Positions 3,001-35,878 of a stretch of DNA of 62,441 nucleotides are shown piece by piece. The translations under genes and the position numbers were made by a program. Origin of the DNA: Chara braunii (taxonomy: Eukaryota; Plantae; Charophyceae); assembly GCA_003427395.1 (NCBI GenBank), contig BFEA01000028.1:918662-981102 (forward strand), given 5' to 3'. Within the stretch, counting starts at the first letter, position 1. The number at the start of each line of letters is the position of its first letter. The notes beneath the pieces were generated by a model. It had not been told where the DNA came from and ran no database searches. It saw nothing but the letters and a program-made list of their open reading frames with translations.

Positions 3001-3072
3001 ATCAAATGATCTGCAGGGACTGATAGTTTGGATTTTTATCACTGTTACCAGTCCCGTGAGGGGTTGTGATAT
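1..3072 (-). mobile_element. L1/Tx1-clade LINE copy A, 5'-truncated, decayed ORF2 (end of APE endonuclease, RT, post-RT region); runs off the window start
   Basis: ORF fragments 1831..3042 (FDH..., RGPNFYKFNTSLL, GLDGF, NYRPITLL, DQTGF), 1454..1849 (SVRQGDPIAP, LFADD) and 431..1357 (LGIIDP) are collinear LINE ORF2 motifs broken by frameshifts. Confidence 0.93.
1454..3042 (-). pseudogene. LINE ORF2 reverse transcriptase, frameshifted
   Basis: RT motifs YRPITLL, QTGF, DFKKAYDHVDW (across a frameshift near 1850-1890), QGDP and FADD. Confidence 0.9.
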
Positions 3073-3468
3073 GTTGCTCTTACCAGTGCCTTGAATGGTG
3101 AGTCTGATGCCCGAATTAGAACAGTCAGATCATCAGCAAACATAGTTTCTGTGGGGAATTTAATGTGATTTTTTTTTTTTTTTTAACAAAGAAGACCCCT
3201 TTATTTTATGGGGGGGACCAATCCAGTTGCTTATCACCGGCAAGCATATAGTACAAAGATGCAGCTCAGGGTAGGGATGTTGCAAAAGAAGGGTGAAAAA
3301 GGTGGTGGCAGGGGCAACGTACCTCATAATGCTGCCCCCAACCACAAATTTCTTACCAGTTGACCCGACGTGCATTTATGATGACCGGTCGTTGCCTCNN
3401 NNNNNNNNNNNNNNNNNNNNNNNNNNNNNNNNNNNNNNNNNNNNNNNNNNNNNNNNNNNNNNNNNNNN

Positions 3469-5460
3469 TTTTTTTTTTTTTTGAAATGGGAACAAGGCTC
3501 CAATCTATTCGTGGGGAGCAGCACGTGCTGCGAACCGGGCCCAGCGTCCCATATGGAGATTTACATCGAATTTTGAAAATTTGAGATACCGGGGCCATTA
3601 CCCGGCTTAAATTACTACAACAAACTTCAAAATTGGATGAAATTCAGAAAACAACTCAGGAGCCCCCCATCAATCCTCTTTTACCTCACTCTGGCAAGAC
3701 TTACTGCAACAGAGCCACCATCTCCGTTGCTGTTGTACCCTATTTCCATCCTACCAGCTAGCCCCCGCACTAGTAGGACGCTTGATATCCCACCATCTAT
3801 TTCTCCCACTCACCTAAAAGACTCAAACACCCCCAATCCGTCCCCTGTACCCAACTCCGGAAAGACTTACTGTAGCAGAGCCACCATCTCCGCTGCTGCT
3901 GTACCCTATTCCCGTCCTACCAGCTAGCTCCCTTACTAGTAGGACGCGTAATATCCCACCTTCTCCTTGTCCAACTTACCTCGGTCCCTTAAGAAAACGT
4001 CTGAGCAGTACGAAAAACATGGGAATAGACCTCATGGGTCCTACAAATGCTAAAAAACCCTTGAAATCCCTGGCAAACACTTCCAAGGCATTCCAACACT
4101 GTCCTACTCCCTGCCGAGCTCTTCCAGGTCTCACATCCTGCTTGGTTACAGGGCAACACAACTCACCCCAGCTCCGACCAGCGTCGTCCCAGCAGCAACC
4201 CTTAGTTGTCCCGTGGGATTCCCACCCCAAAGCATCCCCAGATCTCTCTACTAGGCCTCACGCTCCTGCATCAGCAGGTCACAGGGCAACACCCCAACAC
4301 CGGCCAGCGTCCTTCTGGCGTCGAACAGCCGCAGGTCACTGAGTATAACAACATCTAAGCCACCTAAGAAGAGTTGCTAGGAATCCCCAGAGTCCAAAAA
4401 CATTCTTAAGACCACCAATCAGCCCCCCCCTTTTTTTTTTGATGAAACCAATAAAAACAGACTTCCACTATTCGTCTTTCTTCGACGAGCCGACCTCCTC
4501 CACCACATAGTTCGAGGAAGAAAAATAGAAGTAGTCCGCCAAAAAACTTTTGAGTGAATTTTATGAGCCAGCGACAATCAACGGAACCAACTTCCCTTCA
4601 ACCCCCTACTTTTCTTCATCCCTCGACGAGCCGACCTCCTCCACCACATAGTTCGCGGGATGAGAACAGCAGTCACAACCACACACCTTCCTCAACACAT
4701 TCCTCCTCTTACAGACGAGCCGACCTCCTCCACCCATAGTTCGCAAGAGGAGAAATGGTAGAAATCAGGTGAACACCCTCACCCTAGTAAGTGCAGCACC
4801 ACACCTCCTCGAAACACCTGGCTCATAAAACGTAGGCAAGCAACTCATAAATCAGAAGGTTATGAAAACCAAGTAGTCATATAAGGCATATTAATCCCAC
4901 AAGAAGAGAGGACGGAAGGGAAGTTGTTCACTACCCATGGAAATTCCTACGCCTATTCCCATCTTCGCTGAAGGTAAAGGCTCACAAGAACCGAGTGGCT
5001 TACTCCCCCCCCACACAAAACGACCTCCTGCCCTTTCACTGCCTTCACTGGAAGATGCCCCCTCACCTTCCAGCCCCAGTTCAGAGCAGCCCCGTAAATC
5101 TCTCCTGCTCCCTCGGCAGCATACAATACCTCCTAGAGTACGCCCCCGCAGAGACGAAGATCACCCTTCCCTCATGTCCCACCCCCTCCAAGTGAAACAC
5201 CTAGCAACCTCTCACCTTGCTGAAGCCAGCATTGAACCTTTGTCCTCTCTCTTAACCGCCTTAGCTGATCCAACCCAAATCAGCCTGACCCAAAAGAGAA
5301 CAAACCCACAAACCACCCCTACCCTCTCAAGGATCACACCTCCCACCTTGCATAACCCTCGCAGGGTGGGGCTCAACCCTGGAGGAGCGAGTTCAATCAG
5401 CACCTATGAGCCCAAATCCTACGGTATCGCAGCGTGAGACTCAGTTATGACCCACTTTTT
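3469..5460 (-). mobile_element. Poly(A)-tailed non-coding retroelement or long LINE 3' UTR that shares its 3' motif with LINE C; 5' boundary uncertain
   Basis: Poly-T at ~3469-3482. 3495-3555 is homologous to 24775-24835 (LINE C 3' UTR). 4260-4415 recurs at 16973-17130. Confidence 0.5.
3695..3960. repeat. Direct duplication of a ~100-bp block, ~166-bp spacing
   Basis: aagacttactg..agagccaccatctccg...ctagtaggacgc..atatcccacc at ~3696 and ~3862. Confidence 0.85.
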
Positions 5461-5637
5461 GAAGATCCCCCAAACAGATAAACTCTAATATCTAATCGGA
5501 TATCGAATTCAAGATATAAGAGCACATACTAATATAAGGTAGAATAACATAAACTTGAGCTTACTAAAATAGGGAAACACGACAAATTAAGAATTTCACT
5601 CTCAGGCGAGTCGAAACATCAAGAAAAAACTAGCAAA

Positions 5638-5950
5638 TTCACGAGACCATTGGAAATCTAAAAGGTTAGAAATCATTATTCGAGATCCGAGACGAAGCTC
5701 TAATTTACGATGGTCAATATGAAAAGAACAAATCGAGAATTATTCGAAAAATTTTGAGATCATTCATGAGTCCACTGTCTTGAATAAGGTACATGGATTA
5801 TTTTTCACGAGTTCATTGAGAATCTAAAAAGTTAGAAAACATTATTCGAGATCAGAAACGAAACTTTGATTTATGATCATTAACATGAAAAGATCGAATC
5901 GAGAATTATTCGGAAAATTTTGAAATCATTCATGAGCCTGCTGTCTTGAA
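5638..5950. repeat. Diverged AT-rich tandem duplication, ~165-bp unit
   Basis: ttcacgag...aatctaaaa.gttagaaa.cattattcgagatc...gagaattattcg...tcattcatgag...ctgtcttgaat at ~5638 and ~5803. Confidence 0.85.
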
Positions 5951-6740
5951 TCAGACTTGAATTGAAAGCCTAAAGCTACCTTTCATGAGAAATCCAAAAG
6001 ATTCAAAAATTAGATTCGAAACCTAGAGATTATAATCAAAACTCGAATTTACAATCATCTGAAAATCGAAATTGAGTTACTATCTTGAAGCTACCTCCCT
6101 AAAAAACGAGATAAAAACGAAAAAACGGAGGTCACTCAAGCCATGAAGATCAACAAGCATCAGCACAACCCACTATACAATGCAGCTCCACCTCAGCTTA
6201 AATGCCACGTCAGCTAGTTCTCATCACACAGCATACACCCCTATGTCACCACATAGCCTTCCAGGCGCACCCACAGGACACTGGACTGTTGATCATTCTA
6301 GCGCGATAGCCATATCATTGTCGTGCATGGTCATGGCACCGCACCAAATCAACCAATGCGTTGGAGCCAGATGAGTGGTTCCAACCAGCTCCGGTACCAA
6401 ATTGCAACGAAAATGAGCAAGAGCGAAATGACAGAGTTCCAAATTGCAACATCACATTGAAAGCCAGATAGTAGTGAGCTGTCTAGAAAGCAGAAATGCA
6501 CCAATATTGCACCAAAGGAGACCAAAACAACGAACTCAATTGTCAATGTTAGCCCTTGTCTCGCCACCATCAACAATGCGCCCAACGTCTTTCCTCCTAC
6601 TCAACACTCAGCCCCCAGACTACGATCACATAGCTCCTAATCTAGTCTACACTAATCACAACACAACCGAAAACTTCAGCAGCAGGAACCATAGCACGTA
6701 CAAATGTCGCCCATGCAGACCTCCATGACGAACCAGGTAC

Positions 6741-6743
<3 letters not shown>

Positions 6744-6826
<83 letters not shown>
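6744..6826. repeat. (CT)n microsatellite
   Basis: Directly visible. Confidence 0.98.
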
Positions 6827-6830
<4 letters not shown>

Positions 6831-6884
6831 TCACCCCACACTCATCTTCCACCCGAAAACCACCACCATACCCTGCTGACCTTT

Positions 6885-7050
6885 GTTCCCATGCCCGACT
6901 TTGGCTGGGAACTGGCACTGTATCCTTCAGCGCCCACCATCTCACTGCTAGCGGTTGTGAGCGCTCTTTCCAGCACCGCTGCAGCACAACATACAAATGC
7001 CCGAATTACTGAAAGGTAGGAGGGCACTTTCCTATATGGAAAGTGCTTGC
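6885..7050 (+). pseudogene. Possible hAT transposase C-terminal dimerisation-domain remnant
   Basis: LTASGCERSF is in frame. With small frameshifts it is flanked by CPTLA/ELAL upstream and TAAAQHTNAR downstream, resembling the hATC motif P.LA.LA..L....SAS.ERSFS......T..R. Confidence 0.4.
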
Positions 7051-7676
7051 CTGGGCCTTGCCACCTTGAGCCCAGTAACTTCACATTGGGCCACAGTATC
7101 TGCACCTAGGCCCAATTCAGACAGCGTCCTGGGACCGAAACAGTCAAGTGCGCCCAACTGTACAACGTGGCCTGGGTCACTTGCTGCATCCTGATAGGCC
7201 GAAAAGCCTTCTCCCACGTCGTGCCTGGAAGAGCCTAGAAGGCTCACCAACCTGTGGTTGGACATCATGCAGGGCCCTTCAACCAAGTGGCGCCCAGTAA
7301 CTGTCTGACGCCCCCCAAAGACCCCGAAAATGTCAAGCTTACGCCTCTTGGAGAACTGTATAGGCCCGCCTGCACTTAGGGCGGGCACTTTGCTTGTAGT
7401 GGGGCACCTCAAGATCCTGCCGAGGACTGTTATCCTCCCACTTTCTTTTTCATTTTAGAAGGAGACTACCTTGAGACATCGTCGTTGAACTGGCAGCCCC
7501 AGATAATTCAGAAGGAATTTTGTTCTGCTCATCTGATCGTGATTGGATTCGAAATTGGGTCTGTATTTCAACAATTCGTAGGTGTACCGACTGAGGTAGG
7601 CTCATGGGTTCATGGGTTCTTGCCTCAATTTTGATTCTCAAGTTTGCCTGGGAGATGTTTGCAGCCCGTCAGGGGT

Positions 7677-7935
7677 GCGTTTTGCACCCCTGAGTCTATT
7701 TTTCGTCATTTGGCCATACTAGTCGTCCGTTCGGGTCCAAATGGTAATTGGAAGGGTGATGAATTTGTTGGGGGGGCAATTTATTGGGAACGGCCAGTTC
7801 CCCGTCAGGTTGCATTTTATACCCCTAAGTCAAATTTTCACCGTTTGGTCATACCAGTCATCCGTTTGAGTCCAAATGGTAGTTAGAAGGGTGGTGAATT
7901 TGCTGGGGGGGGAATTCATGGGGAACGGGCAGTTG
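7677..7935. repeat. Tandem duplication, ~135-bp unit
   Basis: gc.tttt..acccct.agtc...gtccaaatggta.tt.gaagggtg.tgaatttg.tggggggg...gggaacgg.cagtt occurs twice. Confidence 0.8.
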
Positions 7936-8210
7936 TTGCTTGCGAAGGACTGGTAGCTGCCCGTAAGAGGCCGAGGAGGCCGCAGTCCTTGAGTTGAACA
8001 TTTCAAAATCGAAACGAAGTGGGTCCACTTTTCTCGAATAGACAGGCACTTCGAATAGACCACATACATGCTCTATTTGACTACAACTCACATTTCTTTT
8101 ATTCAAATTTCGAATAGGAAAAACTCTTGTATTCGAAACAACATTGCCTTTTTTTTTTTTTGAGGTTAGTGTTGTCCTTGTGCTCCCCACCACTGACATG
8201 CTGCATGCTG

Positions 8211-8244
<34 letters not shown>

Positions 8245-10034
8245 NNNNNNNNNNNNNNNNNNNNNNNNNNNNNNNNNNNNNNNNNNNNNNNNNNNNNNNN
8301 NNNNNNNNNNNNNNNNNNNNNNNNNNNNNNNNNNNNNNNNNNNNNNNNNNNNNNNNNNNNNNNNNNNNNNNNNNNNNNNNNNNNNNNNNNNNNNNNNNNN
8401 NNNNNNNNNNNNNNNNNNNNNNNNNNNNNNNNNNNNNNNNNNNNNNNNNNNNNNNNNNNNNNNNNNNNNNNNNNNNNNNNNNNNNNNNNNNNNNNNNNNN
8501 NNNNNNGGGTTCAACCTCCTGATGAGTTTGTGAAAGTCCCACGAAACAGTCTGGTACAGTCATGCTTTTTTTGACTACATAGCCAATATGACAACACACA
8601 CTATAGCGGACCCACCAGGTGTGGTGCTCCGCCTGGGATGATGATGGAGATGGAGGATGAGGGAGGAGCGAGATGGCACAACGCAACTCCCGCACAAGAC
8701 TCCAGCGCACGTACTCCAAAACTGTGCGAATGTAGAACGATCACGAAAACAGACAACTGTTGGGGTATACCCCAGCGGACTGACGGGATTGGACTGGACT
8801 GGCTGGTACCGACAGGGGTACCGGCCTAGACTGGACTGGACTGCCCCTGAATAAAACACAGGCCTGTGAGAACAGGCCAAGGGGCTGGTCTCACAGGCCA
8901 ACCAGAGGTCCGCTACACGATCCTCGGCCTGTGATGGATCGCCTAGATACAAGCACGCTTCCGCCAAGAAGCGGAACTCTACCAAAGAAAAAGAAAACCT
9001 GAGTAGTCTAGGATGCGGAGCAAGTTCCATGCTGAGTCCATGCGATGCAACCTAGGATAGAAAATGTCACAAAACAGCAATGTCACAGCTAACAACCTAA
9101 GTGAAAGCAGAAGCAACTAACTAGCATACATGTCCTAGGAAAGCAGTACTTGAAGTAGTGACAACTAGATCCTAGAATGTTGGAGGCAGTAGCCTCAGTC
9201 TGGGAACAACTGACTAGTATATAAGTCCTAAGAACAGCAAAAGCAGAACAACTAAATCCTAGAAATGTCAGAGGCAGTAGCCTCAGTCTGAGAGCAACAA
9301 GCAACAACAAGACAACCATATGTCATAGGAGATGTGTGTCGCAAACCAAAGGGTGGGATGGTCTCTGAGGGTGGCGAATGCAGCCTAGGGGTCGAAAACT
9401 CCTAAGGGCATCCACGCATAGTGATAGGGATACACATGTCATCAGGCTCAATGAGGGTAGGGAACTGGGAGCGAACAAAACCAATGACCCTAACAGATAC
9501 ACCATCAGGGCGGGTAATGCTCGACTAAAGGGGTGACCGCTGTGGAGGGTCGACCATGCAAGGGAACAAGGAAGCCTGGTATATTGGGCGCACCTAGATG
9601 AAGCATGCAAGGCTGCCTAACTAGGGCGTGAGGGCCTGCAGAGGGTAGAAAGATGATAGGTAAGGGAATCATGCAAGTGACTCCTAAAGTGAGGGAAGTC
9701 GGAGCTAGATCCGTAAGACGGGAAGCCAGGGCAACGCTACGGTCTCGATGCCTATGTGTATACCAAGGGAGAGCCCAACTCAGAGGAACCCGACTAAAGG
9801 GGAGACCATCATGCGACACGACAAGGGTACTGTATAGGGTAAAGTGGTAGGAGAGTGATGACGTCTGAAGTAGGTAAGGCAGATCGTGACGAAGTCCATG
9901 AAGCTACCGATGACGTCCACGATGAGAAGTCCGGAATGTCGTTGATGAAGAGCCGCAACGTCGACGAGCTGAAGTAGCAAAACTGATGTGGATGGAGTAC
10001 TGAGAAGTCAAAGACGTGGGGAGGTAAGTCAGAG

Positions 10035-13000
10035 TCAATCGTCGTATCGAGCAGGACGACGACGAGTGCGCTGTGGACGCTCAGAAGCATCCGGCTGCTG
10101 CTGAAAGTCTGCCTCAGATGGAGCAGGCTCGAATTCAGCTATCTCCTCAGCCGAGGGAGAAGGAGGAGGGTCAGTGGGCTGAGGGGGAGCAGTCGACCCA
10201 GCACGACGGACACGGTCATAGGCACGCACCAACATGCGAGCGTGCTGCAAGTTCTCGAGGGGCTCCCAGGTAGCCTCCTCACCAGGGTACCCCTTCCAAC
10301 GTACGAGATACTCGACATGGGGAGGGTTGTCGTCGGTGACTCGACGACCAATGATGTCTGAAACGAGGAACTCCTCGTGGTCGTCCACCATGATGGGTGG
10401 AGGGCGCTCGTATGGTCGTCCGGCGAAACGCTCAAACGGTCTGCGGTAGGGACGCAGTAACGAGACGTGGTAGACATCGTGCACACGAGCCTGGCGTAGG
10501 TAGTCGGGCAGCTTCACACGGAAGCTGACTGGGCTAGAAGCCGTATCAAAACCCACGGCCTGGAGGATGCGGCATGGGCCAAAGAAGCGATGTCGAAACT
10601 TGCGAAGCGTGTGCGCTTCGAGCTGTAAGTGGCGGGCGTCGATAAGCACATCATCACCGACTTTGAATGAGTGATCCATCCTCGATCGGTTCGCACGTGC
10701 GGCCATGCGAGTCTCGAAAGCGGCTATGTGCTCATGTGTGGTCTTCATGATCGACGTCATGTGTGCAACCCAATCATCCAGCGTGGGACAACTCGTGTCG
10801 GGGTGCATCTGTGACGGTCGAAGGAAGTCCGCGGGAACACGAGGGTGATAGCCGAGGTTGCAATAGTAAGGCTACATCCCGATGGTCGGCGAGACGGCGT
10901 GGTTGTATGCTATCTCCGCGTGGGCGAGATGGAGATCCCACTGCTGGTCGTCACGAACAATCTTTCGGAGAATATCTCCGAGAGTCTTGTTCGTGACCTC
11001 GGTCTGACCATCAGTCTGAGGATGGTAAGACGAGGAGAAGCGGAGCTGAGTGTCATACACCTCGTGGAGCCGTCGCCAGAATCGGCTGGTAAAACGCGGG
11101 TCACGGTCAGATATGATGCTCAGAGGTAAGCAGTGGTCACGCACGACTCGGTCAAACACGATGTCGGCGACCTCACGTGCACTGATGGCATAGCGGCACG
11201 GAACAAAGCGTGCACGCTTTGTGCAGCAGTCGACGATGACCAGGATAGCATCATGACCGCGAGGGGTCGGAGGACGAAGAGGACCGATAAAGTCCATCGA
11301 GATGGACTGCCAACGACCCTCAGGGATAGGAAGAGGGTGGAGCAGACCATAAGGAAGGTGGTTCGCACTGTTCACCTCTTGACAGGTGGGACACTCTGCG
11401 ATGTAGTCCTTCACAAAGTCCTTACGCTTCGGCCAGACGTACAGGCGGCTCACACGAGCCAACGTCTTGTGGAAGCCCATATGACCGGCGACTGCCTGGT
11501 CATGAAACTCTGCTACTGCTCGGACACGTAGTTGTCCAGTGGAGGGAACGCAAATACGGGGCTCTCTGGTGCCCTTTGAACTGTGTCAGTACACAAGACC
11601 GTTGGCCCCGAGAGAGTAGTTTGGGACGGTCTTGCCACTCCGAAGGGTCACGTGGATGTCGCGATAGTCGGGGCAGTGGCGGTACTGAGTGCGAAAGTGG
11701 TGACCGAGATGGAAGAGAGCTGGATCTGCTCCTGGTCGTGGTCAGGGCACTGGGATAAGGCATCTGCGACCCGATTAGTCTCACCTTTGATGTGCTCAGT
11801 GGTGAAACTAAACTCGGATAGGCCGCGCCACCAGCGAGCCTGTCGAGGAGTGAGCTTCGACTTTGTCAGAAAAGCCTGGACAACAGAGTTGTCCGTACGC
11901 ACCGTGAACGGTGCCCCGTGCAGGTAGTGACGCCAGTGCCGAGAGGCATAAACTACTGCGAGAACCTCACGTTCATCTGCGGTGTAGTTTATCTCGGCGG
12001 GCAGGAGCTGACGGGAGTAGAAGGCTATCGGACAATCACCTGAGCGAGACTCGATAGTGCCGTCCTCGGCGATGGTAGGCGAATAGTCAATAGAAGGCTC
12101 GTCAGTAGCTAGACGAGTAGGCGTCAGCCGGGAAGCAGTGGTAGGGGTAGGTGGTGGGAAGCGAGGGATACGAGGATGAAAGGAATCAGGAGAGGAGGGG
12201 AAGATCTGAGAAAGCATTGCTCCTACGGCAAAGTCTGACGCATCGGTGGTCAGGATAAAAGGGCGGTCAAAATTGGGTACGTAAAGAACTGGTGCGTATG
12301 TCACCGTCTTCTTGAGGGCGCGAAAGGCGTCCTCGTGGAGGGGTGTCCAAGCCCAGGGTGGGTTCTTCCGGAGGAGGGTGAAGGTAAGGAAGTAGGAATA
12401 TCTAGCGTATCCCTGGATGAAATTACTATAGTAGTTGGTAAGGCCTAGGAAGCTGCGAAGCTGCTTGGCGGATGTGGGGACGGGCCACTCCGCGATAGCA
12501 GTGATCTTCTCGTCGTCCATGTGGAGACCCTGGTCAGACACGTAGTGTCCTATGAAATCCACTTTGTGCTAGGCAAAGCGACACTTGCTCAGCTTGGCGT
12601 GAAAGCCATGTCTGCGCAAGCGGTCAAGGACGTCGCGGAGGTGTCTGAGGTGCTCCTCAAGGGTACGACTGTAGACCAGGATATCGTCGAGGTAGACGAG
12701 AACGTACTGCTCCAGGATGTCCCTGAAGATGTCGTTCATCGCCCTCTGAAAGGTAGCGGGTGCGTTGGTGAGGCCGAATGGCATCACCGTGAACTCGTAG
12801 TGACCGAAGCGCGATCGGAACGTTGTCTTCGGCTGGTCGGCTGCAGCAACGTGGATCTGATGGTAACCGCTACGAAGATCAACCTTCGTAAAGAAGCGGT
12901 TGCCTGCTAGGCGGTCGAACAACTCGTCGGAACGAGGCATGGGGTAGCTGTTCTTAACCGTGTAGCGGTTGAGGCCGCAATAGTCGATGCGGAGACGGAG

Positions 13001-13960
13001 AGTTCTATCCACTTTGCGAGTAAAGAAGACGGGTGCACCCCATGGGGAGTTGCTGGGTTTAATGAAACCCAGTCTCAGGAGCTCCTCAAGCTGACGCTTG
13101 AGTTCGGTGGCCTCGGGGATCGAGAGTCTGTAGGGTGCCTGGTGGTGAACACGATAGTCAGGCACAAGTTGGATGGAGTGCTCGACGTCGCGCATCGAGG
13201 GGATGCCAGCGTACGAGAACGACGATGGGAAAACGTTGTGGTACTCTCGAATGAGGTCACGAACTGCGGGCTCCAAGTCGGTCGTATGCGAGTTCCTCAG
13301 CGTCAGCGTCGGCGCGCGACGACGGGGCGGACTCGACGGACGACGGAGGGTGGAAAATAGAGATGGGAACCATGGAGATCGAAGGAGGATCTGGCTCCAT
13401 AGGGATGAGCTCAGCGTCGAATCAGGGTGGATCATAGTGTAAGAGATCCGTCACGTTCACCATAAAGAAGGTGACGTCGTCCTGTCGGATGAAGTGAGCA
13501 AACTGCCGAGGCGAGGTGACAGTAATAGAAGGAGATGGTGTGGGCGCAGAAGGCTCCGGGGGAGGAGGATCGGGGCGTGGTGTTGCAGTGGTACCTATGA
13601 AAGGTACGCGATACGTCTGTCCACACTTCGTTTTGAGAACGAGAGTGTTGGTCACCCATTCGGTGTCGGTGCTGCGAAACCGACGAGACCACGGAGTGCC
13701 GAGAATGAAGTCGTACCCTGTCTCCATCATATCGAAATGTGCAGAGGAGCGGTGGCGACGAGACGCCAGGGGACAATCAGTCGGCTCGAGAGTGAGGAAG
13801 AAAAGGAGGGCGGTGACCGTCTGATCGAAGAAGCGTTGGGTCTTGTCATCCCCTAGGGTGATAGAGATGGGAGTCGGGTACGCGGGCTTCTTTCACCATA
13901 CGTGGGTGAACGAAGTCGCTCTGAGAATCGGAATCCCACACGCGACGTGCACAACGACCA
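10035..13960 (-). pseudogene. Gypsy pol: aspartic protease, RT, RNase H, integrase and chromodomain, with stops and frameshifts
   Basis: Protease (VWDSDSQSDFVHP...YDFILG); RT ([34 protein letters not shown]); RNase H (TTDASDFAVG, ERE, TDN, VADALS); integrase (H..GH, CPTCQ, SMDF, SDRDPRFTS, HPQTDGQTE); GPY/F-like FFGP; chromodomain EYLVRWKGY...TWEPLENL. Confidence 0.95.
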
Positions 13961-24709: not shown

Positions 24710-27343
24710 CCCTTGTGATATCCCTCTATCCCGGTGGTGGTAAGAGAACCGTCAGAATTGAGGGCTTATCTGTCTGGCTGCTCCATCTATTGGTGGAGAG
24801 TGGCACCTGCTGGAAACCGGGTCCAACGTCCCATTGATACATCAGGTAGCACAAAAATTGGTGTTTGTTGATTCCTGGGGCTGTGGTTATTATTGACTCA
24901 TCCCGGGGCACCTATATCCCATGGAGCTGTTAGTGTCACCCTACCCTTTTTAAAAGCACCCATTATCCATTACCCCAGCCCTATTTCAGCAGCCCCCCTG
25001 TATTGCTATGTTTAATCATTTAGCCTAGCCTGGTAAGACAACCTACACCACCCCCTGAGACCTCACCCTATCCTTCTGAGTCAACCAAGTACCCTGTTTC
25101 CCTGTTCCCCCAAGCCAATGCAGTACAGGGAGACGTGTGCCATTTGCTGTTGCACGGGTGGACAATGCCTTGATTGTATTGTCCCATGGAGCTGCCGGCA
25201 TTCCCCATCACTTTTATGGAGTGTATTCTATTCCATTGTAAATCTTTAAATCTTAAAACCCCTTAAACCTTGTACCCTTTCAGAACCCCTGCAGAAGCCA
25301 TGCAAAACCCGTGCTTGCCACCATTATTGATCCTTGGAGTCCGCAACAACAGTGCCCTCTCTCAGTGTTGGTGTCTTCGTCGTCGTTGGTGCCTGTCGCT
25401 GTGATTCAGTCCCCTATCCTTCAGTAGTCTGGAGAGCAGAGGCAGGCAGTGAGGCGAGCAGGGGAGGGCAGTGGAGCAACTGCGAAGGGGGAGGGGGAGA
25501 GTGTGTTGGTGCATCGGGTTTGTTGGAGGGAGCGAGGGGAGGGGGGTTGGTTGGGCAGGCGGGTCAGAACTTGGGAGGAGGATGAAGTTGGGTTGGGGGT
25601 ATGGGACTTGGAAGTCGCTAAGGGGTTTCCTCTGCCAATAGGGTTCCGTTCTCCTCAATGGTTTCCATGTAATATCCAGATCGGTGTCAAGTTCCGAAAA
25701 CAGTTTGTTAGGGTCCTGCCAAATCTGCATACAAGAGTCTCGAATGACCTCCTTGATGGGAGGGTCTTTCTCATCAGAGAGTTCATGCTTCATTTTCCAT
25801 GCTTCCTGGGTTTTGGTCCTGATTTACTCTTCGACCACTTTTTGCGCCTGCAGCAGGCCAAATTGGTGGTCCTTTCTTTCAAATGAGCATTTGGCTCTCC
25901 AAGCCAACATAAGGATATGTAACCTTGTATACGAAAAAAGGTTGCTCGCAAACGAGGACCAATGTGCCATTAAATGGCGGCTCTCGCGCAGTAGCAAGAG
26001 GCCTAGGTCCCAAGGGATGTGATATCCAGTGAGGGAGTGAAAGGCCGCATCCCACCATTGCCATAATTGGGTGACCATCGGGCACGCCAGTAAGTAGTGT
26101 TCGAGGGTTGCTTTGGCCAGCGTGTGTAGAGGCATTAATGGAAATCCAAAGCTAGTTTTAACATTCCTTCCTGCATAGTTTGAAGGTTACCTTGAGCATC
26201 TTTAAGGCTATGTATTCTGCTGTTCCTGTGGTTCGCCTTCATTTTCTGGAAGAAGAATTTCGTCATGGCTTCATTGCTTTCCCAATCTCTCATTCCAGCT
26301 TTAATGGCTAGTCCTTGTCTCTTCCAGTCCGCCAATTGTCTAAGTTCCGCCCTGGCTTTTTCCAGGAGCTGTTCGGATAGTGGCGCCCCCGGGTTAGCAA
26401 TGAGGTTAAATTTTATAAGTTGTACCATTGCTTCCAAATTTTCTTGTCTTGCCCTTCTCCTTCTGGCTTCCTTCCTCGAGAAAAGGCTCGCCCCCTCTCC
26501 CAATCGCTGGATTGCAGGTGGCAGATCATTAAGAATTTCCCCCTCCCTAAAATTATTCCTTAATTCTGCCCATTTGCTCTTTAGGCCTTGTCCGAAAGTA
26601 TCTAGATTGAGGAGTGATGTATTAAGTTAAAAAAAACTCCTCCCTGGGGAGGTGTCAAGGGAGAGTGAGAGGTTGATAGAGATTGGATTATGGTTGAAGC
26701 CGTTATAGTACGGTAGCCTTCCAATAAAACTTTCCAAGGTAGCTCCCTCCAAGGTTTTAGATATGAGAAAAAAATTGATTCTTGAGGAGGTTGTTCTTCC
26801 TTGAGACATTTTCCTGATACAGGTGTAGTCTTTTTGGGACGGATTTAGCATTCTGTAGGGATCCTTTAGTTTTTTTTTTTACCATAAGTTCGGACAGGAT
26901 GACGTGGCAGGATCTTCAGAGGAGTCATTGGCCCAGGATATCCTGTCCAAATATGGGCACTGAACTGTGTTCCAATCCCCTACTATGACTGTATGTCTTT
27001 GGGGAGGATAAAAATCGTTGATTTCCTTAAGAAACTCTATTCTGTTATTCATTGAATTGGGGGCATAAATGTTTATAATTGTGATTTCTTCTTCCCTGTA
27101 AGAAAGGTCTAGCCTGGCCCATCTACCACCTAAAGGATCTGTTGCGGTGGATGTGACTACCATGAAATGGGCTGCTTCTGTGTTCTTATGTGCTAAAATG
27201 AGCACTCCAACAGAGGGAGGGCTAGGGCTATGGACTACAACTATAGCCTTGTAGTTTCCCATTCTTCTAAGAATCTCCTCTCTTACGGTTGTGTGGGTCT
27301 GGGAGCTAGTCAGGTGCATTTTTTGGAGACATAGAATATCCGG

Positions 27344-27523
27344 CGTCGAGCGCATCGGCCCCCGCGCGAGCGAGGGCCCTCCCGGCCGCGTCACGCAGGA
27401 AAAACTTAGGCTTTCAACTTTTTAGAGACAATTCGGGGACGACACAGTAACCCGCGTCGACCCTTCGCCGCTCCGGCCGAGTGCGCCAACCGTACATCCC
27501 ACGGCTCCCTACGATGGTATAGG
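27344..27523 (+). repeat. Left terminal inverted repeat (180 bp)
   Basis: Ungapped reverse-complement match to 34097-34276 with scattered substitutions. Confidence 0.93.
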
Positions 27524-29079
27524 GTCCTTCGGGGCTATGAAACACCCGCAGACGCGTGTGCGGGGTCGAGCTCGGATGGCGGCCGTATATACAGCCACGT
27601 CTGTGACCGACCCTCGTCCACGTCGCGGATGCGAATTTACCATATTTTTCCTAAATTAAATAATGGGTAAAAAAAAAATAAAAAAATATGGGGTTGTAAG
27701 GATTTTTAATCCCTACAACCCCATATTTATTATTTCGGAAACATATAAGTTTTTAGAATAATAAAAAATAAAAAACAGAAAAGGTGGAGAAAATAAATTG
27801 AAAAATAAGTTAAAAAAAAAAAATAAAAAAATATGGGGTTGTAAGGATTTTTTGTTGGTAGTTCTTTGTATTATTGGTTTTTACGTTTTTTTTTTTTTTN
27901 NNNNNNNNNNNNNNNNNNNNNNNNNNNNNNNNNNNNNNNNNNNNNNNNNNNNNNNNNNNNNNNNNNNNNNNNNNNNNNNNNNNNNNNNNNNNNNNNNNNN
28001 NNNNNNNNNNNNNNNNNNNNNNNNNNNNNNNNNNNNNNNNNNNNNNNNNNNNNNNNNNNNNNNNNNNNNNNNNNNNNNNNNNNNNNNNNNNNNNNNNNNN
28101 NNNNNNNNNNNNNNNNNNNNNNNNNNNNNNNNNNNNNNNNNNNNNNNNNNNNNNNNNNNNNNNNNNNNNNNNNNNNNNNNNNNNNNNNNNNNNNNNNNNN
28201 NNNNNNNNNNNNNNNNNNNNNNNNNNNNNNNNNNNNNNNNNNNNNNNNNNNNNNNNNNNNNNNNNNNNNNNNNNNNNNNNNNNNNNNNNNNNNNNNNNNN
28301 NNNNNNNNNNNNNNNNNNNNNNNNNNNNNNNNNNNNNNNNNNNNNNNNNNNNNNNNNNNNNNNNNNNNNNNNNNNNNNNNNNNNNNNNNNNNNNNNNNNN
28401 NNNNNNNNNNNNNNNNNNNNNNNNNNNNNNNNNNNNNNNNNNNNNNNNNNNNNNNNNNNNNNNNNNNNNNNNNNNNNNNNNNNNNNNNNNNNNNNNNNNN
28501 NNNNNNNNNNNNNNNNNNNNNNNNNNNNNNNNNNNNNNNNNNNNNNNNNNNNNNNNNNNNNNNNNNNNNNNNNNNNNNNNNNNNNNNNNNNNNNNNNNNN
28601 NNNNNNNNNNNNNNNNNNNNNNNNNNNNNNNNNNNNNNNNNNNNNNNNNNNNNNNNNNNNNNNNNNNNNNNNNNNNNNNNNNNNNNNNNNNNNNNNNNNN
28701 NNNNNNNNNNNNNNNNNNNNNNNNNNNNNNTTTTTTTGGTTTGAGGGGGTGGGGCTGGGGTTGCGCCGCCCCATGGCGCTTCCCAAATCCCAAACCCCCC
28801 TCCCCATTGGCCGCCATGCGGCCGCAAAGTTGCGCGGCCGCGCGGACACGCCCGTGGGGGCGCGGCCTAGGCCGTTGTCGTGGACTTGTCCGCGGATGGC
28901 CACCGCCGAGGGGGATTTGTAGCCGCGGGTACAACTTGCCTTCCCTAAAAAAAACGGCTGCCCGTTTGCAACGGGTGCCTGCTAGCATTCTGGGGACTGT
29001 AAGTCTTAGTACTTCTGATAGCGCCACATGACGCTTTACTTTTGGTTTTAGTTTTAGTTTTTCCAAAAAATAAAATAAT

Positions 29080-29146
29080 AAAAAAAAATTGGATCATTTA
29101 TCGATTTACGTGTGTCATCATTGCATAGGGGCCATACAAATTTCTG
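29080..29146 (-). ncRNA. U6 snRNA 3'-half copy (internal stem-loop through oligo-U tail), diverged
   Basis: Minus strand reads ATGGCCCCTATGCAATGATGACACACGTAAATCGATAAATGATCCAATTTTT. Plant U6 recalled from memory is ATGGCCCCTGCGCAAGGATGACACGCATAAATCGAGAAATGGTCCAAATTTT. Manual count: 44/52 identical, ungapped. Confidence 0.85.
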
Positions 29147-29340
29147 CGCGGCTGATTGCAGCCGCACAATCATCAGGATCGTGCGACCGAAATCAACTGC
29201 GCCCGTTCGCCTGGGCTGCCCCAAAAGGAGCCAGTCTGAAGTCGTGCACATATTTGATCCCCTAATCTGCGGGGTGACCGTCTAGTGTACTTGACTATAT
29301 GGGCTGGCTCCTACTACAACTGTAGTAAGGGCAACCCCAC

Positions 29341-29380
29341 TATATGTATGTCATCCTTGCGCAGGGCCATGCAGACCTTC
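29341..29380 (-). ncRNA. Second U6 snRNA-derived segment (internal stem-loop region)
   Basis: Minus strand GCATGGCCC-TGCGCAAGGATGACA matches U6 GCATGGCCCCTGCGCAAGGATGACA with one deleted base. Confidence 0.8.
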
Positions 29381-31758
29381 GCGCGGCTGTTTTCAACCGC
29401 GCGATCTCAGCGATCTCACGGCCGAAAACGACCGCGCCAAAAGACTGGGCCGCTCCAAAAGGAGCTAGCCTAGTGGCGATGTCATCGGGGCTCGACCCCG
29501 ATATCTGCTGGGTAAGAGTCTTGTGTGATATCGTACTGGGCTTGCTCCTATTCCACACTGGAATAGGAGCAGCTCTTCCTTTTGAAGAGCTTGGCCTAGT
29601 GCGATATCGCATGTGGACTCACGCAGGCCATGCCTGCGTACCCCAGCAGCCACAACCGCTGGTTAGCCACACTACCGCCAATACGGCGACCATCTGGCAG
29701 CACGACACACATCTCGTGGCCACGTACATGGTGCGGCCACCTATTTGGCCTACTAAGGCCCTGAATCGCACGACTGTTATTTTAAGTAGCATAGTCTAGC
29801 TTCAGTTTTTCCACGACCACGTACCCCTGCACCCCTGTCGGGAATCGCAAACGACAGGTCGTACCGCCGACTCCAACTGTTTCAATCGGACGTCAATGAC
29901 GTCATGCGTCAACGACACCAGGTTCTAAAAAGGTTTAAGTCTCTCAGTCATAGGGTTGGTCTGAATAAGTTTGGCAACGTCAATCTCATCATATTCCTGA
30001 AATCCAACGAAAAGGGTCGGACGGCGTCTGACCTTGAAAAACTTGAGCAGAAACCGTCACAGGGGTTTTTGTCCCGACAGCCTTCCCCTCCCCCATTAAG
30101 CGACGTCCCCGTCGCTTACCATAAAGTAATACAAGGAGAAGTCTTCATAAGACTTCACCAAATATATCACATAATCACAATACATCTGGAATTAATCCAG
30201 ATCTTACATACTCACACCTGACGAGCGACGTTTCCGTCGTTCATTTTTCTTTCCCTTCATAATCTCTTGGATACTCTTTTGTAAAATACTCCATGCAAAC
30301 TTCATTATTTCCGATAACGTCAACAAGAAAGGCTTACTTTCAAGCCCTTAACAGATAAAGGCTTACTTTCAAGCCTTTCAATCCTTTCAGACCTTCCTTC
30401 GAAAGTACTTTCATTCACTCACGAGTTGGAATAGGGTCAGAAATAACCTCTGGCAGGCCTTTCCCCAATCTGGAATCCACCGTTGGCTTTACCCAACCTG
30501 AGGAATTACAAGAACGTTTTAGAAGAATGATCCTAGTGTCATCCCACTGGTGGCCACTCATTTCTTCTTTTAGTCTCTCATAGATGGGTCAGGCTTATCC
30601 CCCTGATGAGACTCTCTTCAGGTTCTAAACCCCTGTCAAGGTTTCGTCAGGCTTAACCCCCTGAGGGTCTGTCATCAATACAACACATACTGCCAAGAAT
30701 TTAACCTGGGTCTCTTATGTTCATGGGGATGCATTCCCAACACCTCAGCACATCTATCGCTGCCAGGAGTTTAACCTGGGCCTCCCACAAAACACAAGGA
30801 TACTCACACTATACTACAACATGTGCCGACACCATCCCGAAGAGAAATCACCCTTCCAAAAGTCCTTGTCCAGTCCCTCTAATTCCCACTCCAACTTAAT
30901 CATCATACACGATTTACCTCCTACATGTCTTGTAAATGCGTCGAGGAGTGGTGTAATCTATAAAGGATAATATCTCGACGTCAAGCCCCGCTTTAGACTC
31001 GAGCCTTACCACTTTCTCTTCGATTTCAGTGCCATATAATTGTCAGTTTCTACATGGCCGCGGGGGTAGAGCAGATACAAGGTAGAAATTAGAAGAAGAG
31101 GGGAAGAGATGGAAAGAAGAGGGGGGGAAAAAAAAAAAACGGAGCGTCGCGAATCTAATTGCGACGCAGGGCCAGATGCAGCGGTAGAAGCATCTGGACT
31201 CTGAGTTGACAACAGACTGTTGAACTTCAACAGTCTGCTCTACTTGGCTTTATACAACCATTTAGGGCTGCATATGACCGGGGGTAGCGGCCAGATGCAT
31301 TACCAATGCCTGGAACTTGGTTCCCCTAGGGGAACATCAAGTTTCTCAGCCCTTGATCGCGTTTGAGATCAAGGGCCAGGCCTCACTCTTAGTTTTGGCT
31401 GGGGGCAAAGCAACTGTCCTCAGCCTCCAGCCAGCTATAAAACAACCAACAACCAGCTAGCCAACATTCATTTGTGGCTGGTGCTGCTAGCATTTCACTT
31501 AGGCGAATGCTGGCTGCTGGAGGAGGAACTGTTGGTGGAGTAAGAAGGAGCGGAGTGGAGGTCTGCAAGAGAGAGGGGAGGACTGCTGGAGGTGGTCATA
31601 TTTGTGGAACACAGTCATAGCCGCCATCTCAGCGAGTGGAAGGGAGAGAAGCATTGGAGGTCTGCAGAGAGCGTGGGAGTGAGGACATCCATAGTTGTCG
31701 CTGCACTTGGTGGAACGCAAAGGAGGTGTTGTTCGCTCGGCACGACAACGACGACCCT

Positions 31759-32020
31759 TTTTGGCGGTGACGCGGAAGCGCTGCCGATTTTTTATGGCGA
31801 TGGCACTGAGATTTTGGCGGTGACGCGGAAGCGTTGCCGATTTGTTGCGGCGGCGACACTGAGATTTTGACAGTGACGCGGAAGCGTTGCCGATTTTTTG
31901 CGGTGGCGGCGCTAAAATTTTGGTGGCGATGCGGAGGTGCTGCCAAAATCTTCCGGCGTCGACGGTGTTTTTTCTGGCAGCGACGCGGAAGTGCTGCCGA
32001 ACTCTTGCGGCGGTGACAGT
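31759..32020. repeat. ~53-bp minisatellite, ~5 units, inside the TIR element
   Basis: ttttggcggtgacgcggaagcg.tgccgattt...cactgaga units at ~31759, 31812, 31865 and 31918. Confidence 0.85.
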
Positions 32021-34096
32021 GCGTTCTAGGTGGTGGCACGGGAGCGCTTCCCGTTTTGCCTTGACTGTGTGGGACATTTTGTGGCAGCGTGTTCTGGTAT
32101 TGACAACGACGGCGTGGTGGTGCTCTTGGTGTGACGACGAAGCTGAGACGCCGTCAGATTGTTGGGAGGTGATTGTGTGTTGAGAAGAAGTTGCGGCAAG
32201 CGATCGCTCTAGGAAGTGGTGTGGATCGCTTTGCGGGCGACTCGTCGTGACAATTGTCTCTTCTGGAGTGCGATTTTACATGATCTTCTTGAGTGGGCCG
32301 TCTCTTTAACTTCACTCAAGGTCAATTATTGACTCAGACCCCTTCACGCCTGTGTGAACCCACACTTGCTTGACCCTATTCTTTGAATATCCACCGAAAA
32401 GGTAGAGGAAATGTGTATTTGCGCGTGTGAATGAAAGTCCGACGTGAGTTTGAACATACATTGTTTTCTTTTGAACTTGTTGTTTGATTTGATGTGCAGG
32501 TAGGTAGAAGGGTGCCTGAAAAAAGGGAATCTGACCATGTCAATGACAATGAGAGAATAATGTTTGTTTTCTGTTACTCACCTGTATGTATGTTGAAGGG
32601 ATGAAAAATCACTAGACGACGAGAAGCGAAGCGATCACACAAAGAAGAAAAAACCAATTGGACATATATTTTTTTTCCTGAGGTTACCCGTTCTTTCCTG
32701 AATGACCCTCCCCGTCTATGACCGTCTATCTGAATGACTTTCTCTTTTGTGATCTCTTTTCTTCGTCTAAGTTACCCTTGCCGTCAGGCGACAAGGGACC
32801 ATTTTTTGCCTGTCGTGGTAGACATATTTCCCTTAGGAGGCATCTGAGGTGAGGATTCGTTGCCTTAGGGGTCGGCCCTGCTATCGACTCGGAGTGGACC
32901 GCTTATGCGGGGGGATACCATGCTGTTGTGGTGGAGCCAGCCCGACTTCTGAGATCCGAGGTTCGCTTGGGCAAGGACGAGGGGTGTCCCAGACCACCTC
33001 CTAGGGAAAGGACATACGCCTATTCACAAAAGGGCTTTAAGGTTCTTGACGCCTCGCGCTAAGGGGAGTTGCCATAGCATACCCCTCTAGTGGCCGTTTT
33101 AGGAGTCACTGACATATGGGGAACTGGCGCCAGAAGAAGCCCAGTTCGTGTACTCTCTAGTATTGGAGGGAGTGCGAGTAGGTACTACCTCCGCGGATAG
33201 GTTTGCACCATAAGAAGTGCAAACCTGGGGAAGTTGAGATAGGTTGATAGGAAGTTGCAACTAGAGCAACGCTTTAAAGATTCTTCTGATGAAGATTGAG
33301 ACTTCATCATTCAAGGGACGGAAAGAATCATTGTTGCCCAGGAGGACAAAGCAACCAACAAAATTTGGAAGCAGACCCCGTCCTCGACGGGGTAACCTGT
33401 GCTTCGGTTGTCTAAATCGGTCGCTGACTTGTATAGTGGTAGCCAGATTACTCGCAGATGGCATTCACACCAAAGTTAGAAAGATAGCGAAGTCACCATT
33501 AAAGCAATTGTATCCTAGCTGTACTTGAGAGTTAGGAGATGTCTGCGTTTTCTAGCAGTCAGTATGAGGTGGAACGAAAGAACTTGGCACGCATCTCATC
33601 AAGTCGAAAAATTATGTCAGCCTAGCCATCTGGCAGGCAGAGTAGAGATATTTTGGTCAGACGCTACTTGAGCGTCGCTATGCATGTTAATCATGCTTTT
33701 ATCCTTTTGTTAATAAATGTTATTTGAAGTCACGTCAACTCATGTTGGTTTGTCATTGGATGATAAGCCAAGTCAATTTTTGTCGATTTGATCCGAACGA
33801 GTGGTATGCATGATTGTATCGATTTCATAAGATAAGTCAACTTACATTGACATGGGTCTTCTTTATTTGAAAGTGTTTTGTCTGAGTAACTCCTGATTGT
33901 CTTTGAAAGAAGGGACTAGGATCGCCCAAAGTTTTTTTTTTTTTCCTTACTACAACGAACGAGCAAACGCCCTCGGCCGGCCTACCTCTGCAATTGCATT
34001 ATAAAAGCCTTCGCATGTGGGTCAATAGCTCGACGGGGATACGCCCCTAAGGGTGGTGACGGCCCGTTAGGGAAGGTAAGTTGTGGCCCGCGAGAA

Positions 34097-34276
34097 CCTA
34101 TCCTGCCGTAGGGGACCGCGGGATGTACAACTGACGCACTCGGCCGGAGCGGCGAAGGGTCGACACGGGTTATCGTGTCGTCCCCGAGTTGTCTCTAAAA
34201 AGTTGAAAGCCTAAGTTTCTCCTGCGTGACGCGGCCGGGAGGGCCCTCGCTCGCACGGGGGCCGATGCGCTTGACA
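34097..34276 (-). repeat. Right terminal inverted repeat (180 bp)
   Basis: Ends ...gatgcgcttgaca and is the reverse complement of 27344-27523. Confidence 0.93.
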
Positions 34277-34789
34277 CTGGGGGGTTGGTGTCATTCCATC
34301 CAACCGTTGTCATGAGGCAGTGCCATTTTTCTGGGTTGGACAAAATTATTGTCAGCCCCCTTACATTCCAAGACCGGATGACTAGGTCCCCCCTTGATCC
34401 CTTCATTGATTGGTTACTACGTTTCTGTTCTTAGTTTGGTTATATTGGTTTAAGATATGCAAGAAGAGCTACCCTCTGTCTCGTCCTCCAGTGGGAATAA
34501 TTTCTCCCGCAGTTCCTCCTCCAAAATCATGACCCCTGCTTCTGCTAATGTAGCCAGGCTTGCTGCATTCTGGGTCGTAGCTGCCTCATTCCCCAATGCT
34601 GTGATGTACAAGCTTGCTACCATCCACCAAGGTCTCCGTTGCCAACCCTCGGCCAGTTCTGTTTGTTGACCGAAATAGGCTATAATTGGTCGTGCGTCAT
34701 ATCGAGGATTTTTCTCCGTTTCCCCAATGACTCCTGCCCCCTTCAGTTCCTCTTCTGGTGCCGGCTTACTTGCAATTCCTGTGGATGAG

Positions 34790-35878
34790 TGAAGAAGGTG
34801 GAGGAGGAAAAAGGTGTGAGGTGGTTGGCTATGACGGATGGGTGAAGAAGAAGGAGGAAGGAGACAGTGTGAGGTGGTCGGCTACGGTGGATGGGCGAAG
34901 AAGATGGAGGAGGAAGAGGGTGTGAAGTGGTTGGCTATGGCGGATGTTTGAAGAAGACGGAGGAGGAAGAAGGTGTGAGGTGGTTGGCTATGTTGGATGG
35001 GTGAAGAAGATGGGGGAGGAAGATGGTGTGACGAGGTTGGCTATCGAGGATGGGTGAAGAAGATGGAGGAGGAAGAAGGTGCGAGGTGATTGGCTATGGT
35101 GGATGGGTAAAGAAGATGAAGAAGGAAAATGGCGTGAGGTGGTTGGCTATGGAGGATGGGTGGAGAAGATGGAGGAGGAAGAAGGCGTGAGGTGGTCGGC
35201 TATTGAGGATGGGTGAAGAAGGTGGAGGAAGAAGAAGGTGTGAGGTGGTTGGCTATGGAGGATGGGTGAAGAAGATGGAGGAGGAAGAAGGTGTGAGGTG
35301 TTTGGCTATGGTGGATGGGTGAAGAGGATGAAGGAGGAATAAGGTGTGGGGTGGTTGGCTATGGAGGATGGGTGAAGGAGATGGAGGAGAAAAAAGGTGT
35401 GAGGTGGTTGGCTATGGTGGATGGGTGAAGAAGACGGAGGAGGGAGAGGGTGTGAGGTGGTTGGCTATGGAGGATGGGTGAAGAAGATGGAGGAGGAAAA
35501 AGGTGCGAGGTTTTCGACTATGGAGAATGGGTGAAGAAGATGGAGGAGGAAGAAGGTGTGAGATGAATGACTATGGAGGATGAGTGAAGGAGATGGAGGA
35601 GGAAGAAGGTGTGAGATGGTTGGCTATGGAGGATGGATAAAGGAGATGGAGGAGGAAGAAGGTGTAAGGTGGTCGGCTATGGAGGATGGATGAAGAAGAT
35701 GGAGGAAAAAGAAGGTGTGCGGTGGTTGGCTATGGTGGATGGGTGAAGAAGATGGAGGAGGGAGGTAGCGTGAGGTGGTTGGCTATGGCGGATGGGTGAA
35801 GAAGACGGAGGAGGGAGGCGGTGTGAGGTGGTTGGCTATGGAGGATGGGTAAAGAAGATGGAGGAGGAATAAGATGTG
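34790..35878. repeat. 53-bp purine-rich minisatellite, ~20 copies
   Basis: Unit ggaggaggaagaaggtgtgaggtggttggctatggaggatgggtgaagaagat. Confidence 0.97.

Follow-up and report, generated by a model that had tools for sequence, protein, structure and literature searches.

A hairpin-rich cassette with a U6 snRNA-derived tail inside a Ginger1-like transposon of Chara braunii: a possible SINE-like retroposon

Within a stretch of 62,441 nt of Chara braunii DNA (contig BFEA01000028.1 of assembly GCA_003427395.1; hereafter the window), we found a short (731 nt), non-coding, many-copy cassette in which two diverged tandem units of hairpins each lead, on the minus strand, into a piece of U6 snRNA (Table 1). 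At a rough probability of 0.45, this cassette is an old SINE-like non-coding retroposon with a U6-derived tail, which was later carried along by a transposon. The RNA read from its minus strand would string hairpin units together and finish with the U6 3' half, followed by a U-rich tail. The 3' tail of U6 contains the Pol III stop and is bound by La and Lsm2-8; the U6 piece would supply the 3' end of the cassette RNA with such a stop run and such a binding site, and this end may have made the RNA a substrate of a LINE reverse transcriptase. Priming of one copy would have taken place at the U tail, and its integration just inside the left terminal repeat of the transposon would have left a 17-bp duplication; the inserted copy would then have multiplied along with its Ginger1-like host.

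Rfam cmscan placed the U6 model RF00026 twice on the minus strand, at 29083-29146 in unit A (32.3 bits, E 7.7e-6) and at 29323-29382 in unit B (21.3 bits, E 0.018). With just the 3' half of U6 to align, neither score reaches the gathering score of 44, and the matches were judged by E-value. No Rfam family matched at the gathering level anywhere in the window, and a full-length RF00026 match above gathering is absent, the 5' 43-46 positions being missing. Compared with the tea U6 printed in PMC4929424, unit A corresponds to nt 43-105 (51 of 63 positions identical) and then runs into T9 at 29080-29088, and unit B corresponds to nt 42-73 (27 of 32 columns identical); at its 3' end the U6 piece is closer to plant versions than to other versions. 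These matches bear out the preliminary description of the locus, which had recognised a U6 3' half ending in T9 and had named RF00026 as the model to search with. Since the ACAGAGA box is absent from both units, the AGC triad is altered in both (Table 1) and the internal stem-loop (ISL) is damaged in both, neither unit can be a catalytic U6; an RNA of this sequence would be unable to act in splicing catalysis. The strand that pairs with U4 in stem I is also altered in units A and B, and the stem-II/ISL region carries three changes in unit A. Unit B retains 24 of 25 positions of the U4 stem-II-pairing region, its ISL stretch matching U6 at 24 of 25. The earlier suggestion of a decoy RNA, if one of U4 is meant, is weakened by the altered stem-I strand and triad of both units and by the three changes of unit A. 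No significant 5' half of U6 was found near the array (p 0.18-0.40), and a U6 gene split by an insertion was rejected on this ground.

Table 1. Positions of the cassette, its parts and its host element within the window
Feature	Positions	Strand	Remarks
Whole folded cassette, 731 nt, from candidate duplication to T-rich tail	29066-29796	minus	MFE -337.5 kcal/mol
T9 run, then T-rich tail	29066-29088	minus	sequence
Candidate target-site duplication, tail side	29049-29065	plus	15/17 identical to 29797-29813
Candidate target-site duplication, head side	29797-29813	plus	direct repeat with 29049-29065, 15/17
Unit A	29105-29337	minus	alignment with unit B
U6 snRNA nt 43-105, unit A	29081-29143	minus	ACAGAGA absent; triad UGU; ISL with three changes; RF00026 E 7.7e-6
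26-bp hairpin with 5-nt loop, unit A	29146-29202	minus	20 Watson-Crick and 4 G-U pairs on minus; 3' arm self-complementary
UUUU-loop hairpin, unit A	29218-29231	minus	
First hairpin, unit A	29307-29332		12 bp; two two-sided changes against unit B
Unit B	29341-29575	minus	alignment with unit A
U6 snRNA nt 42-73, unit B	29349-29379	minus	triad UGC; ISL minus one C; without U6 3' end; RF00026 E 0.018
26-bp hairpin with 5-nt loop, unit B	29381-29437	minus	20 Watson-Crick and 4 G-U pairs on minus
UUUU-loop hairpin, unit B	29452-29465	minus	
First hairpin, unit B	29543-29571		12 bp or more, perfect
Y-shaped fold, long stem closing two hairpins	29516-29620	plus	better on plus strand
Possible third unit, much older: hairpin and U6-like remnant	29602-29659	minus	uncertain; p 0.02-0.11
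Ginger1-like non-coding TIR element	27344-34276		ends (T/C)GT...ACA; flanks CCGG and CTGG
Left TIR, outer part	27344-27535	plus	about 90% complementary to right end
Left TIR, inner part	28913-28948	plus	matches 34067-34103 inverted; same side of assembly gap as cassette
Right TIR	34067-34276	minus	TIRs about 210 bp

Units A and B repeat on the minus strand with a period of 236-238 nt, in agreement with the ~236 nt first described, and are identical at 156 of 238 positions (66%), with an alignment score of 178.5 against 56.5 for the best shuffle. Each unit contains a 12-bp hairpin, a hairpin with a UUUU loop and, directly next to the U6 piece, a 26-bp hairpin whose loop has 5 nt. The reversed architecture proposed earlier, in which foreign hairpins stand 5' and the U6 3' half comes last, was recovered. 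Three hairpins per unit had been described and are present, but the one with an N4 loop is only the 3' arm of the 26-bp hairpin; likewise, the units were located correctly, but the folded segment continues beyond the former limit of 29580 to about 29800. Only two units can be demonstrated. The remnant at 29602-29659 is suggestive of a third, and it gave no match with covariance model R1, which was built from units A and B.

Between the units, four stem pairs are altered on both sides, two in the first hairpin and two in the 26-bp hairpin (chance expectation 0.7-1.1, p 0.006-0.02); the compensatory double changes previously noted in one hairpin were found again, the first hairpin showing both. 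Inter-unit identity is 70-85% in the stems, 74% in the U6 part and 40-56% in the linkers, and the ISL stretch differs at 6 of 26 sites against 40 of 88 in the linkers (Fisher p 0.03). Among the relatives described below, the majority letter at 29416 mends one mismatch in the 26-bp stem of unit B, and the variants at 29410 and 29582 fall on loop positions. These comparisons, made from two sequences only, give modest evidence that the stems may have been conserved.

G-U pairs alone do not decide between the strands. Over ten helices, 13 G-U pairs form on the minus strand and 9 on the plus strand. The 26-bp hairpins have 8 on minus and 2 on plus, and two of the minus-strand pairs are common to both units. 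The 21-bp stem at 29522-29613 favours plus, with 6 against 0, and the segment 29505-29640 folds to -85.3 on plus versus -68.6 on minus. The G-U argument for the minus strand, which had been made earlier, is thus weaker than claimed. The four two-sided changes, the better retention of the ISL than of the linkers and the two shared minus-strand G-U pairs support a retroposed structured RNA, whereas the one strong stem favouring plus speaks against it. At 29504-29516, unit B reads as a 5' splice-site-like sequence on plus and as a U1-5'-end-like sequence on minus, which is not kept in unit A.

Several other identities of the hairpins were considered and rejected. By eye, the stretch before the 26-bp hairpin is similar to the 5' end of U2, yet the likeness is at the level of shuffles (p 0.12-0.55) and the stretch is the 5' arm of that hairpin; neither a U2/U6 fusion nor a U1 or U2 5' head was found in the cassette, for which Rfam gave no U1 or U2 match, including at 29490-29530, where U1 likeness had been suspected. 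The U2 reference was the 5' part of a U2 snRNA that scores above the Rfam gathering level at 922-1027 of a 1767-nt contig (L001) of the viral collection. A U4/U6 fusion was likewise dismissed, since neither the 10-nt match of unit B to U4 (p 0.11) nor the 6-bp helix with the U6 piece (p ~0.19) exceeds chance level. A CUGAUGA-like motif occurs in unit A only and has no Rfam match to a hammerhead, and no ribozyme family of Rfam that would indicate a retrozyme or another self-cleaving ribozyme was matched at E up to 10. The ends of a nested solo LTR around the module were unconvincing. No internal Pol III promoter in the form of a tRNA, 5S or 7SL head was detected within the cassette by Rfam or ARAGORN, which counts against a retroposon.

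The cassette stands out as a folded segment. Its folding z-score is -15.6 on minus, the U6-sense strand, and -8.6 on plus; sliding z-scores are negative from ~29095 to 29800 and return to about 0 at 29815-30054 and 28855-29154. A candidate 17-nt direct repeat brackets this zone exactly, its tail-side copy directly adjoining the T-rich tail. It matches better than any other part of the 50 nt next to the tail (shuffle p 0.003-0.03), and was found post hoc in T-rich sequence at one locus. The layout is that expected of a retroposed insertion that may have been primed at the U tail, and the candidate duplication points to a cassette that entered the transposon by insertion instead of having belonged to it from the start. 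A retroposon is supported by the T-rich tail beside one copy of the 15/17 direct repeat, the other being at the end of the folded zone, and by the strong fold of the whole segment on the U6-sense strand; the post hoc choice, the T-richness and the single locus of the duplication weigh against it.

The location of the module inside a DNA transposon, reported previously, was confirmed by delimiting a TIR element around it. Ginger1 was described from animals and has a CCGG/CCGT target duplication (PMC2836005). The host is like Ginger1 in its TGT...ACA-type ends, TIRs within 40-270 bp, a CCGG-type 4-bp duplication and a length within 2.6-7 kb (PMC2836005), the left end (CGT) and the right duplication (CTGG) departing by one transition each. 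Apart from its occurrence outside animals, it differs in that this copy yielded no transposase or Gypsy-like integrase: the longest open pieces of the element had no Pfam match, an 831-N gap covering part of the region. The element interrupts the reading frame of an L1-type endonuclease close to the start of that frame, the two parts of which lie at 26882-27343 and 34277-34430 (minus). Its left TIR is interrupted by a 1.4-kb stretch (27530-28915), which contains the gap, and resumes thereafter; the cassette tail lies about 120 nt inside this TIR, on contiguous sequence. The right part of the interrupting stretch (28735-28917) is very high-copy, with a summed depth of 4000-13000, and has related RNA reads. 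More hairpin-rich zones of the element, with folding z-scores of -4 to -6 and no Rfam matches, lie at 30055-30414 and 31075-31554. On the minus strand, a tRNA-like piece with A- and B-box-like motifs occupies 30755-30822 (Rfam 19 bits, E 2.6), and a second T-arm copy lies 70 nt away, at 30690-30714; T5 runs at 30041 and 29931 separate the tRNA-like piece from the cassette.

The window as a whole is repeat-rich eukaryotic DNA with L1-type and Gypsy frames and assembly gaps. Fragmented Gypsy-type protease, reverse transcriptase and integrase frames lie at 10038-13892 (minus), and two unrelated tandem arrays, each with a 53-bp period, at 31759-32070 and 34783-35878. L1-type elements are plentiful in the window, which, together with the precedent of SINEU (PMC4494074), favours a retroposon.

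Relatives of the cassette are numerous in DNA. In DNA run X1, contigs identical to the locus have a depth of about 8, the single-copy level. Summed at 80% likeness, the depth reaches 157-216 over unit A and 1136-2296 over unit B, and the 2 kb upstream have 360-11200; none of these values represents true copy number. At variant sites 16-50 distinct contigs were distinguished, the figure of 50 being for one variant in unit B, and long relatives are 82-88% alike (differing at 12-18% of sites). According to joints in X1, some relatives have retained both the U6 piece and the UUUU hairpin but carry other letters in between. The multicopy relatives and the two-sided stem changes refute a dead single-copy local duplication, which the preliminary description had left as the alternative. 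The X1 depths, the 16-50 contigs and the relatives with exchanged letters between U6 piece and UUUU hairpin also argue for a retroposon. On the other hand, there is no sharp depth edge at 29796, and some relatives join the cassette to the same upstream flank (joints of 29769 to 29846 and 29907), so that the host element may simply have carried along most of the copies counted. These two observations count against a retroposon, as do the lack of an empty site among the 15 of 58 joints listed and the rarity of the 3' unit (A) relative to the middle unit (B), which is the opposite of the usual 5' truncation. No relatives were found in metagenome or viral contigs, a result of little weight since both collections are poor in eukaryotic nuclear DNA.

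This copy of the cassette is decayed and appears to be silent. Searches of two raw oligo-dT runs, with 901 and 1634 million letters, retrieved 20 and 29 reads, of which none was at least 95% alike, and RNA depth was zero over 29240-29845 in two oligo-dT runs even at 80% likeness; the transcript proposed earlier was thus not seen in libraries of a type that would miss oligo-U-ended RNA, and the lack of RNA reads counts against a retroposon. The oligo-dT reads on the U6 piece continue into an ACAGAGA-containing 5' half, indicating that they come from another locus. In runs X5, X7 and X8, reads on 29106-29142 represent a variant U6-like stretch with ACAGAGA from another locus. Its transcript, present in oligo-dT libraries, does not end at the U tract but continues into other sequence, and in X8 it has a depth of about 460 and a contig of >500 nt.

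It is fairly unlikely that the transposon has the cassette as a gene of its own, its master copies encoding a selected structured non-coding RNA that would act as a decoy or regulator, be it on U4, Prp24/SART3 or Lsm2-8, or by feeding or blocking Dicer through the 26-bp hairpins. The conserved stems and ISL stretch, the many relatives sharing the upstream flank, the stem-II-pairing region retained in unit B and the tRNA-like piece on the same strand are consistent with such a gene. However, no transcript was seen in the two oligo-dT runs, both units have an altered U4 stem-I strand and unit A has changes in stem II as well, the T5 runs intervene between the tRNA-like piece and the cassette, and the candidate duplication would mark the cassette as an insertion.

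A neutral origin seems less probable still. The cassette would be a 5'-truncated U6 retrocopy that came to lie beside palindromic DNA, was locally duplicated and hitch-hiked with the transposon, its stems being kept by arm-to-arm copying at the DNA level. LINE activity is known to give 5'-truncated U6 copies (PMC4476161), and the lack of reads in the oligo-dT runs, the 13 to 9 division of G-U pairs between the strands and a covariation backed by only two sequences all speak for it. DNA-level correction, however, would erase the two G-U pairs common to both units instead of keeping them; moreover, the U6 stretch is kept better than the linkers, and relatives preserve the U6 piece and UUUU hairpin while the part between them is exchanged. 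Very improbable is a relic of an element that targets a fixed site behind the ACAGAGA box of U6 genes, the stretch of U6 nt 42-73 being a long target duplication that separates tandem insertions, a proposal to which the junction of both units at about nt 42-43, the short inner U6 piece with only the last reaching the 3' end, and the precedents of Dada-U6, Utopia and Keno lend some colour, but which conflicts with the missing U6 5' half upstream, the lack of any coding remnant in the units, the Dada-U6 cut at GCGCAA (nt 65-70) about 20 nt downstream of the junction with 6-bp duplications, and the U2 target and 0-20 bp duplications of Utopia and Keno.

Among known systems, the SINE-like retroposon proposed here is closest to SINEU (Kojima 2015, PMC4494074), retroposons of snRNA origin that Tx1 elements have moved into a DNA transposon. 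Both are short, non-coding and built from snRNA, with no recognisable internal promoter and no detected transcript (for the cassette, in two oligo-dT runs); both occur within a DNA transposon, and both genomes contain L1/Tx1-type elements. In SINEU, U1 or U2 forms the 5' head, whereas here the U6 3' half forms the tail behind tandem foreign hairpins, and in a plant lineage. U6 is the snRNA most captured by the LINE machinery and is enriched in L1 particles (PMC4476161); U6/L1 chimeras and U6 retropseudogenes are alike in being U6 mobilised by LINE reverse transcriptase, with 5'-truncated U6 copies accompanying L2 and RTE. The chimeras are one-off copies with U6 5' of a LINE fragment or poly(A), whereas the cassette has U6 at its 3' end, followed by a T-rich tail with neither LINE part nor poly(A), and its unit is duplicated and multicopy. 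Dada-U6 (PMC3706591, PMC8869645) is a DNA transposon that, like the host, is adjoined by a U6 3' fragment, but it lacks TIRs and is flanked by both U6 halves; in the cassette, GCGCAA is intact in unit B and U6 is internal to a TIR element.

No description of U6-tailed repeats, or of U6-derived repeats in this lineage, was found in the literature. Known SINEs begin with an RNA-gene head at the 5' end, and their 3' tail is simple or derived from a LINE. Cassandra TRIM, a plant transposable element, carries in its LTRs the 5S rRNA, a piece of a Pol III RNA gene that acts as an internal promoter; since U6 has no internal promoter, its 3' half, unlike the 5S of Cassandra, can supply only an RNA end or binding sites. 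It is a possible, though on balance doubtful, extension of our reading that the cassette represents a mobile structured-RNA family in which the U6 3' half is a functional tail, giving access to U6 end-processing, a protein coat and LINEs, and that its RNA may titrate U4 or U6-binding proteins; such a family would be the first class of snRNA-tailed retroposons. Only a transcript or independent insertions would make the cassette more than an unusual repeat. If RNA is made from it, hundreds of U6-mimicking copies could interact with splicing factors. If the retroposon reading is true, a multicopy element with a U6 tail behind compensated hairpins would invert the head-and-tail rule of SINEs and would offer a natural test of the features that make U6 a preferred passenger of LINE reverse transcriptase.
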